Source: Histomonas meleagridis 2922-C6/04-290x
Taxonomy: Eukaryota; Protista; Parabasalia
DNA: 64,000 nucleotides
Direction of reading: 5' to 3'
Assembly (NCBI GenBank): GCA_020184695.1
Contig: JAANOX010000224.1
Location: 186,001-250,000, forward strand
Both the position numbers and the translations under genes were made by a program. The notes under the pieces are model-generated. The model saw nothing but the letters and a program-made list of their open reading frames with translations. It was not told the DNA's origin and did no database searches. Shown here piece after piece: positions 8,382 through 54,724 of this stretch (its first letter is position 1; each line of letters starts with the position of its first letter).

Positions 8382-9398
8382 ATGGAGGAAGGCGGTGAGA
8401 ACGAAACGAAACTGGATGTTACACCTCTCGGGGAATTGCAAGCTGTGATCTGTACAGATGAATTTTTTTCAAATCCTAGCGTTATGGAAGAATCACTCGA
8501 AAAAGGAAAAAAGGATATCATGGCATTAAGAGAAGCGATCATAGCATCAAACAAAGCTTACCAAAGACAAATTAATTTGTTAACTTCTCGGCTTAATAAT
8601 AAGAAACAAATTGAGAATAATAAAAAAACGCCTAAAAGAGCAATGCCTTCTAATCTTATCTCAAAAGGCGAGAGGAAAATGTCCAGACAAATAACTCGCG
8701 AAAAAATAAGTGATGATTCTCTAGATATTTGGTGTCGAACAAAATTCATATTTAATTCAATTCCATCTGAAATTGACCTACGCCATATGCTCCAAAAAGT
8801 TGAGGTTGATCAATCTCAATATACAACAAATCATTCACCATGGGAATCCATCTTCAATGTTATTGAACGTTCATACAGTAATGCACAACATATTTCAGTT
8901 CCAGATGTTTCACAAGTAGAGCTTGAAGAAGAGACTTTTTCGGAAACAAATTTAAATCTTCCACCATTTCAAGTTGAAGAATCTCAAAAAAAGAGCAGTG
9001 GAATTTTCAACAATCTTCTCAGTGCCCTTGTTGAAGCCGATCCGATTCCGCCATCTGACGAACCACGCGAAGAATTTTTGCCAAGTCCACATCCTTTACT
9101 TCCAAAGATTGATTGTGACGAATATCTTGGATACTCATTTGATGAACGTCTAAGGATTGAGCTGATTGGCGCGGGATTGGTTCCAAGTGAAACGCTTGGT
9201 CGAAATCAACAAATTGAAGCGGAAATCATTGAAATCAAAAAAGAAATGGAAAATGTACAATCAGAAATTGCTCAACTTGGTGATGAAATATTTCAAAATA
9301 TGCATAAATATAGAGCAATGGAGGCAATGAACAATCGTGAAAATCTAAAATATAAGAAATTTTTGGAAGAAACAAAAAGGAAAAGGAGCAAAAGGTGA
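8382..9398 (+). CDS. Hypothetical nuclear coiled-coil protein, possibly Ada3/TADA3-like (SAGA subunit)
   Basis: 338-aa ORF. The segment YLGYSFDERLRIELIGAGL...IEAEIIEIKKEM resembles the Ada3 C-terminal pattern (S.EER...EL...GL...I..EL...Q.EL). Basic C-terminus. Resemblance judged by eye only. Confidence 0.45.
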   Translation: MEEGGENETKLDVTPLGELQAVICTDEFFSNPSVMEESLEKGKKDIMALREAIIASNKAYQRQINLLTSRLNNKKQIENNKKTPKRAMPSNLISKGERKMSRQITREKISDDSLDIWCRTKFIFNSIPSEIDLRHMLQKVEVDQSQYTTNHSPWESIFNVIERSYSNAQHISVPDVSQVELEEETFSETNLNLPPFQVEESQKKSSGIFNNLLSALVEADPIPPSDEPREEFLPSPHPLLPKIDCDEYLGYSFDERLRIELIGAGLVPSETLGRNQQIEAEIIEIKKEMENVQSEIAQLGDEIFQNMHKYRAMEAMNNRENLKYKKFLEETKRKRSKR

Positions 9399-19421: not shown

Positions 19422-19682
19422 ATGAATATCCATAATTCAGAGATACTAAATGCACAACCACTTGAATTAGTTGACCGTTCTATAGGACAAAAGGTAGTGA
19501 TAGTGACAAGCTTAGGAATAGAGTTTGAAGGAATTTTAAAAGGATTTGATTCTGCTGTTAATTGCGTAATTGACGATGCAACTGAAACAAATGTTGTAAA
19601 CCCAGAATTTAAGCCACGACATCATGATACAGTCTTAGTTAATGGTGGTAGTATATCAATTATTTTACCTTTTGAAAATTAA
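19422..19682 (+). CDS. LSM5: Sm-like protein LSm5
   Basis: PLELVDRSIGQKV...FEGILKGFDSAVNCVIDDATE...DTVLVNGGSISIILP matches the Sm1/Sm2 motifs with the LSm5-type PLELVD start. Confidence 0.8.
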   Translation: MNIHNSEILNAQPLELVDRSIGQKVVIVTSLGIEFEGILKGFDSAVNCVIDDATETNVVNPEFKPRHHDTVLVNGGSISIILPFEN

Positions 19683-52345: not shown

Positions 52346-53488
52346 TTACACAGATTGTGTATTAGTCTCTTTTAATGTAGATTTTCTAGAGGAAATAATA
52401 ATGAAAGCCACAATTACTAAAAGAATTATCCCAATAACAGGAAAAACAATTATATATGTTTGTTTTAAATCTGATTTTTCTTCTTTTTTAGTGGTATCTG
52501 GATTATCTTCAGAGTAATTTTTAGAGTAATTTTCAGACTTCGGCACTTCAGATGTAAATGCGGTCGTATGTACTGTTGTACTCTCTTTTGTATATGTTTC
52601 TGTAGGAGACTGTGTAGGAGATTGTGTAGGAGTCTGTGTAGGAGATTGTGTAGGAGATTGTGTAGGAGATTGTGTAGGAGTCTGTGCAGGAAGTGCTTCA
52701 TAAATAATAGGGCCATAGACTGTATCAAGTTCTTCTAATTCAACAATAGTTATATTGAACTTATGTATGACGGGCAAACGAAATTTAGTAATTTGGCAAT
52801 TTATTTGGCCTTGAATATCTGCGCAAATTAAATCATATGGATCTTTGGTTACTACAAAACGAGCTGTTGGAGGGAACATCATTGTATTTGGATACTTCTT
52901 ATTTATATTCTGGAGTAATTTCAAATTCCTTTTTGCAGTAATTTTGAATATCAACTCTACACCTTTTTTACAAACTGATTCAAAAGAAGAATGAACTAAT
53001 GTAAATGCTCTTGTTATAACCAAAGTGTTCTTATTGAATAGTGTTGGGCTAATCTCATTTGAAGGTTTATAAACTGTTGTATATCCTGCTTTTGCTAATT
53101 TATCAAATCCTCTCATAAATCTATAAAATGTACACAAAAAATTATTAGTGATATTCCCTTTGAATGTTTCAGAATCTAAGCTCGAAATAAGTTCTGGATA
53201 AAATAAGTAGTCATGAATTATTTTAGCTTCATCATAATTTATAGGATCTAAGTTATTTTCTGATAATGATTTTAGTGTGTACGGATCAAATATTTGTTCG
53301 AACCATTTATTTTCATTAACATCTAATGAAACAACTTTTGATACTTCATCATGTACACATTGTTTTAGAGCAGGATCATGTATTTTTGGTAAAAAAGCAT
53401 GTAACTTATATGGGTGACTTTTTAAATCTGGTAAGATACCATCTAATTCGAGAGTACAAATTTCTAAAATATTAAAAAATAAATACAT
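52346..53488 (-). CDS. Type I surface protein with a mucin-like PTQS/PTQT stalk
   Basis: N-terminal hydrophobic leader, PAQTPTQSPTQSPTQSPTQTPTQSPTQSPTE, TM YIIVFPVIGIILLVIVAFIII and a short tail. Confidence 0.8.
   Translation of the reverse strand: MYLFFNILEICTLELDGILPDLKSHPYKLHAFLPKIHDPALKQCVHDEVSKVVSLDVNENKWFEQIFDPYTLKSLSENNLDPINYDEAKIIHDYLFYPELISSLDSETFKGNITNNFLCTFYRFMRGFDKLAKAGYTTVYKPSNEISPTLFNKNTLVITRAFTLVHSSFESVCKKGVELIFKITAKRNLKLLQNINKKYPNTMMFPPTARFVVTKDPYDLICADIQGQINCQITKFRLPVIHKFNITIVELEELDTVYGPIIYEALPAQTPTQSPTQSPTQSPTQTPTQSPTQSPTETYTKESTTVHTTAFTSEVPKSENYSKNYSEDNPDTTKKEEKSDLKQTYIIVFPVIGIILLVIVAFIIISSRKSTLKETNTQSV
52601..52690 (-). repeat. 12-bp coding minisatellite (PTQS/T), about 7.5 copies
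   Basis: TGTGTAGGAGAT/AGTC units on the + strand. Confidence 0.9.
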
Positions 53489-53873: not shown

Positions 53874-54536
53874 TCAACATTCGCACTTTTTCTTACCTCC
53901 GACACTTTTCCCTTTCAGTTCACATGACTCTTTTGTTTCGGTTTGCTGAGATGTGCTCACACCTGCTTTTTCCTTCATTGCTATAGCCATTGTGTAGAAC
54001 AAGTTGTCAACGTTCAGTGAGTCTTTTGCGCTTGTTTCCATAAATGGAATATCATACTCTCGCGCAAGTTGTTCGCCTTCTTCCTCTTTAACCTCTCGAA
54101 CATTGTTTAAGTCACACTTATTACCAATCAATATTTTACATGTATCTTCGCTTGAATCTGATTGTTGGATCTGTTCCATCCAATCTCGAACCTTTTCGAA
54201 AGTCTTGCGATCTGTAATATCGTAAACAATAACTATTCCATGACTACCTTGGTAGTATGTTTTCGTTATTGCACGAAATCGTTCTTGTCCTGCGGTATCC
54301 CAAATCTGGAGCTTCACGATCTTTCCATCTTGGTTAATTGTACGGATCTTGAAATCCACACCTATTGTTGATATATAGTTTTCAATGAAGATATCTTCAG
54401 TAAAACGGATCAAGAGGCAACTTTTTCCTACTCCAGATTCTCCAACGATGAGAACTTCTGATGTTAGAATCAAATCATACTAAAAAGGTAATCACTGTTA
54501 TGTTAGAAAAATAACATACTAATTTCCTAAGCTCAT
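53874..54536 (-). CDS. RAB1: Rab1 GTPase, three exons: join(54536-54520, 54494-54481, 54457-53874), 204 aa
   Basis: The spliced product begins [26 protein letters not shown], the canonical Rab1 start. YISTIGVDFKIRT, WDTAGQERFR, GNKCD, ETSAK and a C-terminal CCEC-type prenylation end (KKCEC). Total 17+14+584 = 615 nt, in frame. Confidence 0.93.
54458..54480 (-). other. Spliceosomal intron 2 of Rab1 (23 nt)
   Basis: GTATGATTTGATTCTAACATCAG: GTATGA donor, CTAAC branch site, CAG acceptor. Its removal restores YDYLFKV. Confidence 0.88.
54495..54519 (-). other. Spliceosomal intron 1 of Rab1 (25 nt)
   Basis: GTATGTTATTTTTCTAACATAACAG: GTATGT donor, CTAAC branch site, CAG acceptor. Confidence 0.88.
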
Positions 54537-54724
54537 TTATTGTTAAAAAAATGTTCTAAACGGTCAAAAGGGCTGAAATTTAAAAAACATCCACTTATTC
54601 AATGAAACCGCCTCTTTTGTCTGAAAAAGTCATCATCGTTGTATTGAAAACCTATTTTACGACGATGTTCACATCGCAAAGTTTTAAAACTTATAATCGT
54701 TATATTTTATTATATATAATAATA

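Follow-up and report, generated by a model that had tools for sequence, protein, structure and literature searches.

A probable Rab1-family gene of Histomonas meleagridis with two predicted ultra-short introns around a conserved 14-nt micro-exon

Organization of the Rab gene and its reading frames

The window, that is, the whole 64-kb stretch of Histomonas meleagridis DNA that was analyzed, carries on its minus strand a Rab gene whose first 31 coding bases are divided by two short segments with the signals of introns (Table 1). The first-pass annotation of this DNA had proposed two very short introns around a 14-nt micro-exon, and its exon/intron string and coordinates are present on the minus strand exactly as given. 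Intron 1, the micro-exon and intron 2 form a cassette of 62 nt. Both candidate introns show the features of the type B class, i.e. a length of 23–28 nt, a GTWY-type 5′ splice site, a fused TCTAAC box and a branch A 6–8 nt from the intron end. This branch A is found at +17 in intron 1 (54503, 8 nt from the end of the intron) and likewise at +17 in intron 2 (54464, 6 nt from the end). The 14 nt enclosed between the CAG of the first and the GTATGA of the second lie within the size range of micro-exons, taken as internal exons of about 27 nt or less between an acceptor and a donor. When both segments are removed, exon-by-exon translation gives a conserved reading frame that is collinear with the intronless paralogues. 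The predicted product has 203 residues and begins with MSLGN, followed by YDYLFK.

Table 1. Features of the Rab gene and of its surroundings in the window
Feature	Position	Strand	Description
Candidate promoter octamer GACCGTTT	54558..54565	-	ends 21 nt upstream of the ATG; weak candidate; may resemble the trichomonad M3 motif
ATG of exon 1	54536	-	start codon
Exon 1	54520..54536	-	17 nt; ATG, MSLGN and TA, the first two bases of a Tyr codon
Intron 1 (predicted)	54495..54519	-	25 nt, phase 2; 5′ end GTATGT, branch box TCTAACA, 3′ end CAG
Exon 2 (micro-exon, predicted)	54481..54494	-	14 nt; last base of the Tyr codon, DYLF and first base of a Lys codon
Intron 2 (predicted)	54458..54480	-	23 nt, phase 1; 5′ end GTATGA, branch box TCTAACA, 3′ end CAG
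Exon 3	53874..54457	-	584 nt including the TGA stop; last two bases of the Lys codon, whole GTPase domain and C-terminal CEC
Stop codon of exon 3	53876-53874	-	
Downstream neighbour	52346-53488	-	380-codon ORF; (SPTQ)n repeat, C-terminal transmembrane stretch; resembles a surface protein

The combination of signals is rare. A motif made of GTATG, CTAACA and CAG in this order was matched twice in the window, both times at the Rab gene, for 0.02 matches expected from shuffles. The search was extended to the genome (281 contigs, 43,133,364 bp), where paired TCTAACA boxes 20–50 nt apart in an AG/GT context were detected only in the window gene and in its paralogue. The exact pattern of AG, a 14-nt exon and GT is likewise restricted to these two genes genome-wide.

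Other sequences were noted on the way. At C111:103259-103308, on the minus strand, two TCTAACA boxes lie 36 nt apart and the second is preceded by GTATGG; a G directly follows the first box, which probably is no intron end. A long tandem array (C11:209898-212831), whose period is about 55 or 110 nt, gave repeated one-mismatch matches to the micro-exon pattern and is unrelated to the Rab gene. The octamer GACCGTTT, which may resemble the T. vaginalis M3 promoter element, precedes the start codons of several Rab genes, including L005 (contig C77) and L006 (contig C271), by about 20–45 nt.

Translation of the incompletely spliced forms was then compared with that of the joined exons. The unspliced frame opened by the ATG at 54536 meets a TAG stop at codon 6, with the same outcome if intron 1 is retained. 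Retention of intron 2 leads to a stop four codons into the intron, at codon 14, and skipping of the micro-exon (first donor to second acceptor) joins TA to A and creates a TAA at codon 6. Because each mis-spliced form stops within about 14 codons, production of the window-gene protein needs the removal of both introns. Within exon 3, the first in-frame ATG does not occur before about residue 97. The sole long ORF of the locus (53874-54473) opens at a TTG within intron 2 and is devoid of the conserved Rab N-terminus, which is supplied by the joined exons, exon 2 minus its first base reading DYLF and the whole codons of exon 3 starting at 54455. The earlier observation that the unspliced ORF lacks the Rab start and that joining the exons provides it was thus borne out.

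Exon 3 scored 215 bits against the Pfam Ras model, with the P-loop and the WDTAGQE, NKCD and SAK motifs all visible, and the protein ends with CEC, a double-cysteine prenylation motif. Scores against solved structures were near-equal for Rab8A (212 bits), Ypt1 (210 bits) and Rab1A (209 bits). In a tree with no Rab8 outgroup, the window gene was placed among parabasalid Rab1 genes, next to the Rab1 of plants, fungi, insects and a cryptophyte. The T. vaginalis orthologue (P0007) is named Rab-1 by its source, and paralogues in this genome are named H. meleagridis RABD1. With exon 3 or the single exons as queries, no full-length spliced product of the window gene was found among the matches of the protein search. 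A look-up of the downstream neighbour's protein, aimed at transcript contigs, gave no identical protein on record. Judged from these sequence features, the locus is very likely a Rab1-family GTPase gene of this poultry parasite, functional by prediction, with two U2-type ultra-short type B introns in an inherited layout.

Twin-intron relatives and other readings of the locus

The twin-intron layout is not restricted to the window gene. Expressed as exon/intron/exon/intron lengths, the window gene reads 17/25/14/23 nt and its paralogue on contig C197, with 86% protein identity, 17/24/14/23 nt. The Tritrichomonas foetus orthologue reads 20/25/14/25 nt, and two metagenomic parabasalids read 17/37/14/30 nt (a contig from ENA) and 20/24/14/23 nt (a contig from JGI, found by a degenerate pattern). 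In each of the five twin-intron genes, which come from at least four organisms or assemblies, the micro-exon has exactly 14 nt. Between the window gene and the C197 paralogue, synonymous sites are saturated (pS 0.75) and dN is 0.09; the two copies therefore go back to an old duplication and have both stayed under purifying selection. In spite of the saturation, they still share their splice signals and the 14-nt spacing.

Sequence changes within the first two exons are for the most part synonymous or conservative. The Leu codon of the micro-exon varies between CTT, CTC, TTA and TTG across the twin-intron genes, and the remaining differences in this exon are third-position changes or a Tyr to Phe replacement. 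In exon 1, the Leu and Gly codons show synonymous differences only (window gene, C197 paralogue and a relative on a Logan contig). This predominance of synonymous change indicates that translation passes through exons 1 and 2 in the frame of the upstream ATG, which requires the removal of both introns. Moreover, two further paralogues in this genome (66% identical), which are intronless, read straight through both predicted junctions. It is very probable that the two segments are genuine spliceosomal introns and that the 14 nt between them are a genuine coding exon. The conserved layout in five genes, the synonymous change and the collinearity of the intronless paralogues all agree with the first-pass annotation on this central point.

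The Logan contig brings in an intermediate form. Its first 31 coding bases are uninterrupted, the 14 nt being fused in frame to exon 1, and intron 2 alone is present. Such a sequence could in principle derive from a partly spliced RNA; an intergenic stretch and a second gene on the contig speak for genomic DNA, and it would then represent a precise loss of intron 1. The public model of the T. foetus gene (P0006, annotated 'RIC1', 178 aa) begins at MIRFTED and is devoid of the P-loop. The true start, with the two introns and the 14-nt exon, lies about 130 nt upstream of MIRFTED (L081, T. foetus MLAK01000897.1, 1373-1500).

Both introns could be real and yet be spliced inefficiently or in a regulated manner, many transcripts being unproductive, so that the cassette would act as an expression gate rather than persist as a neutral relic. 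The early stops speak for this reading: every incompletely spliced or skipped form terminates within about 14 codons, and splicing efficiency would therefore directly set protein output. In addition, the cassette was kept in several lineages though its precise loss is clearly possible, and intron 2 matches at 20 of 23 positions between the old paralogues, above the level of the saturated synonymous sites. However, constitutive splicing needs conserved splice signals just as well, and the early stops are no evidence of design, because they arise automatically when the Tyr codon (TA|Y) and the Lys codon (A|AA) meet GT and AG. No conserved RNA structure was seen either: the predicted fold of the pre-mRNA (54430-54560) was no better than that of shuffled sequences (z = 0.20). 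We consider regulated splicing of this kind quite unlikely.

Translation of an unspliced transcript from the downstream TTG, or from another non-ATG codon, would give an N-terminally altered Rab. The 199-codon ORF spanning 54473 to 53874 is compatible with such a start, and gene callers produced models of this sort on the contigs of relatives (P0002 and P0003, 193 aa; P0006, 178 aa). In such proteins, however, residues derived from the intron would replace the conserved YDYLFK strand, and the T. foetus model even lacks the P-loop. This reading also leaves unexplained an upstream ATG followed by conserved, synonymously evolving codons, and the ATG located within intron 2 is out of frame and missing from the paralogue. 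Initiation downstream of the cassette is highly improbable.

The two-intron appearance could also be a chance likeness in AT-rich DNA at the 5′ end of a decaying pseudogene or of a mis-assembled gene. In its favor, the assembly is Nanopore-based and errors are frequent in T-rich runs, chance matches to the loose intron motif are common across the genome, and the protein search gave no annotated protein for the locus. Against this, the ORF of exon 3 is complete and includes the full set of GTPase motifs and the prenylation tail, dN against the paralogue is 0.09 for a saturated dS, the motif pair is expected only 0.02 times per window, and the exact 14-nt exon with both introns recurs in five genes from at least four organisms or assemblies. 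This explanation, to which we give almost no credit, is close to refuted. Equally remote is the removal of all 62 nt as one intron, with the first GT as donor and the second AG as acceptor, so that the 14 nt never enter the mRNA: the size of such an intron fits the range of long type A trichomonad introns (50–196 nt), but its junction would create a TAA at codon 6 in five of five genes, the 14 nt encode a conserved DYLF with synonymous variation, the internal branch box with its AG and the internal GT are conserved, and in the Logan relative exon 1 continues in frame into the 14 nt.

Short introns of the genome and probable history of the intron pair

The window introns belong to a class that is present elsewhere in the genome. 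Sixteen other T-rich introns of 23–25 nt and of the same form, the removal of which restores the interrupted ORFs of conserved proteins, were found in genes for Arl, MOB, LSm, RING-H2, kinase and armadillo proteins; they are clean examples chosen by eye (L061-L076). Several belong to gene classes that have type B introns in Trichomonas. The branch A was at +17 in 18 of the 20 Histomonas short introns considered (these sixteen and the four Rab introns of the window gene and its paralogue, all four of them at +17), at +17 or +18 in all sixteen, and its distance to the 3′ end was 6–8 nt in the 20 introns measured. Counting matches to a loose single-intron pattern genome-wide gave no enrichment (47 matches against 67 in a reversed control); the motif alone therefore proves nothing when the ORF context is not considered. 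With respect to the splicing machinery, three full-length U2 genes with a GTAGTA box and one near-threshold U6 match were detected. The Rfam U1 model gave no match in this genome; it was equally silent on the control genomes, hence uninformative.

Other Rab genes of the genome differ in their intron content and in their branch boxes. L014 (contig C19, ~8840-9060) carries a 24-nt intron at the intron 2 position and a 23-nt phase-0 intron just before NYVSTIGVDF, the two being separated by a 77-nt exon, and its paralogue L015 (contig C101, ~19470-19600) retains the second only. Both branch boxes there read ATAAC instead of CTAAC. The near-identical genes L005 (C77) and L006 (C271) are interrupted at the intron 2 position by an intron of 23 nt whose branch box is CTTAC. 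A public Histomonas protein of the L005/L006 type (P0143, 194 aa) starts at MEVLLIG and appears to be devoid of its true first exon (MSSTDFDLLF).

In a maximum likelihood tree, one clade (100/99 support) holds the window gene, its paralogue and the Logan contig, T. foetus together with the ENA contig, and T. vaginalis P0007 with three metagenomic relatives. The twin-intron genes, that of the JGI contig included, all fall into this clade. The DNA of P0007, P0004 and P0008 was read and contains no intron.

Comparison of intron positions shows that the intron 1 site is common to the Rab1 genes of T. vaginalis, a plant and a cryptophyte, and that intron 2 is absent from the plant and cryptophyte genes. 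In Brachypodium RIC1 (L088) and in Baffinella Rab1 (L090), the first intron follows the TA of the Tyr codon before DYLFK, i.e. it has the position and the phase of intron 1, and the intron 2 position is empty in both genes. The Nezara Rab1 gene is intronless, hence uninformative on position. The T. vaginalis gene is TvRab1a (TVAG_383350), whose intron, 25 nt long and in phase 2 after a first exon of 16–17 nt, belongs to a set validated by RT-PCR and RNA-seq (PMC6260720, PMC12316389). The single 25-nt intron mentioned by the first-pass annotation for this gene thus exists and matches intron 1, yet it sits in another Rab1 paralogue. The TvRab1a primer starts with ATGACTGCTAATGA, so that the protein starts with MTAND, which assigns TvRab1a to the other parabasalid Rab1 clade, that of the Histomonas RABD1 genes, which start alike and are intronless, with its intron at the intron 1 position. 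Since position and phase are common to TvRab1a and to the Rab1 genes of Brachypodium and Baffinella, intron 1 appears ancient. It is best read as an ancient Rab1 intron, a reading founded on two outgroup genes. Intron positions specific to a subfamily are strongly conserved in Rab genes (PMC3504004), and the sharing of intron 1 agrees with this.

The intron 2 site, in phase 1 within a Lys or Arg codon that follows LF or LY, has a different distribution. An intron with the same position and phase is found in Histomonas Rab genes on contigs C197, C77, C271, C248 and C19, and the same site is occupied in T. foetus and on the ENA, JGI and Logan contigs. Because it is found in at least four Histomonas Rab lineages, intron 2 appears to have been retained and not recently gained; judging from this distribution, it is an old parabasalid Rab intron. 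Of the two origins offered earlier for the second intron, a lineage-specific retention or a lineage-specific gain, retention is favored and gain is not. A small GTPase gene of T. stableri, TsBTPI-3_018792, has a first exon of 33 nt and a 25-nt phase-1 intron (PMC12316389), and may carry intron 2 alone. In this scenario, the common ancestor of Histomonas and Tritrichomonas would already have had the intron pair, always kept 14 nt apart, both introns would have been lost from the Trichomonas orthologues, and intron 1 would have been lost precisely in one close relative.

Proposed splicing of the cassette and comparison with known systems

We propose that an ordinary parabasalid spliceosome removes the two introns one after the other. 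Whichever intron goes first would merge the micro-exon into a longer exon and leave an ordinary single type B intron. The distance from the branch point of intron 1 to the 5′ splice site of intron 2 is 22 nt, and U2 and U1 particles together usually cover more RNA than this. Given this gap, two complexes probably cannot sit on the cassette together, and sequential removal is probable; such a sequence of events is in any case the ordinary expectation for a micro-exon. Regarding the order of removal, a consistent difference in donor strength that would set it was not found, and the fold at the level of shuffled sequences gives no sign of a structure that would bring the sites together or set the order.

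Two splicing events within 62 nt had been taken to imply a minimized spliceosome or a strictly ordered reaction. We found no support for this implication; 23–25 nt is the normal short class both here and in Trichomonas, and full-length U2 genes and a borderline U6 match are present. No spliceosome other than the one that handles the other 23-nt introns of this genome is called for. The fixed +17 position of the branch A suggests that this machine works at a minimal, ruler-like distance. A stronger proposal would make the 62-nt cassette a natural minimal substrate, on which two full splicing cycles take place in less RNA than one conventional spliceosome covers; we regard it as unlikely. If it were true, it would mean either a much smaller footprint of the parabasalid spliceosome, measured by the fixed donor-branch distance of about 17 nt, or an obligatory, coupled order of removal in which, for example, components are handed on from one intron to the other. 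The exact 14-nt spacing of the five genes would then be required by the splicing mechanism and not by coding alone.

In Trichomonas vaginalis and T. stableri, RT-PCR and RNA-seq have confirmed type B introns of 23–26 nt with a TCTAAC box fused to the 3′ site (PMC6260720; PMC12316389). The earlier statement that parabasalids are intron-poor holds for trichomonads (PMC6260720, PMC12316389). Like the window introns, the Trichomonas type B introns are GT-AG introns of 23–28 nt with a loose 5′ site and a branch box 6–8 nt from the end. Unlike the window gene, with its second intron 14 nt further on, TvRab1a is listed with one intron and falls in the other Rab1 clade, and the T. vaginalis orthologue P0007 is intronless. 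Three genes of T. stableri were described as the first trichomonad genes with two introns (PMC12316389, S2 Table), and multi-intron candidates of T. vaginalis failed validation (PMC13548475). The T. stableri genes resemble the window gene in having two type B introns in one small gene. They differ from it in that their middle exons are 54, 73 and 76 nt long instead of 14 nt, no small GTPase is annotated among them, and conservation in T. vaginalis is seen for none, whereas the window layout is conserved across genera.

Outside parabasalids, the first intron of the Brachypodium and Baffinella Rab1 genes has the same position and phase as intron 1 and follows a first exon of 14 nt, but it is about 480 nt long with ordinary signals. 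Animal and plant micro-exons (internal, about 27–30 nt or less; PMC8378409) are, like the 14-nt exon, too small to be bridged by exon definition, and a stepwise removal of the flanking introns is expected. Unlike it, animal micro-exons have long flanking introns, are in many cases alternatively spliced and need dedicated enhancers or factors. The 14-nt exon is flanked by introns of 23–25 nt and must be constitutive for the protein to exist. Ciliates (Stentor, Paramecium) and the Bigelowiella nucleomorph have introns of 15–30 nt, near the physical minimum and almost fixed in length. Those genomes are intron-rich, whereas parabasalids have only tens of introns, in which the branch box is yeast-like and fused to the 3′ site.

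Part of this picture is already published, namely the ultra-short Trichomonas introns, the Rab1a intron and the T. stableri genes with two introns. What is new is an internal exon of 14 nt that is flanked by two type B introns and conserved in Histomonas, Tritrichomonas and uncultured relatives; it is the shortest internal exon that we found reported for parabasalids (14 nt versus at least 54 nt in T. stableri). The link of intron 1 to the Rab1 genes of a plant and a cryptophyte, as read from their gene sequences, is also new. The genome paper of this attenuated Histomonas meleagridis strain describes genes with one intron at most (PMC8529796). At least three Histomonas Rab genes carry two introns by our reading, and such predicted multi-intron genes are new and stand against the published annotation (PMC8529796). 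Gene models are corrected at the window locus, at the T. foetus orthologue that lacks the P-loop and at another Histomonas Rab devoid of its N-terminal strand, and the sixteen short introns could seed a motif-aware re-annotation of Histomonas introns.

A micro-exon conserved across genera provides a clean natural substrate to ask how close two splicing events can lie and in which order they occur. As both introns, one or neither are kept across parabasalid relatives, these genes form a compact system for the study of intron loss, in which an ancient Rab1 intron would be among the few introns that an intron-poor metamonad has kept.
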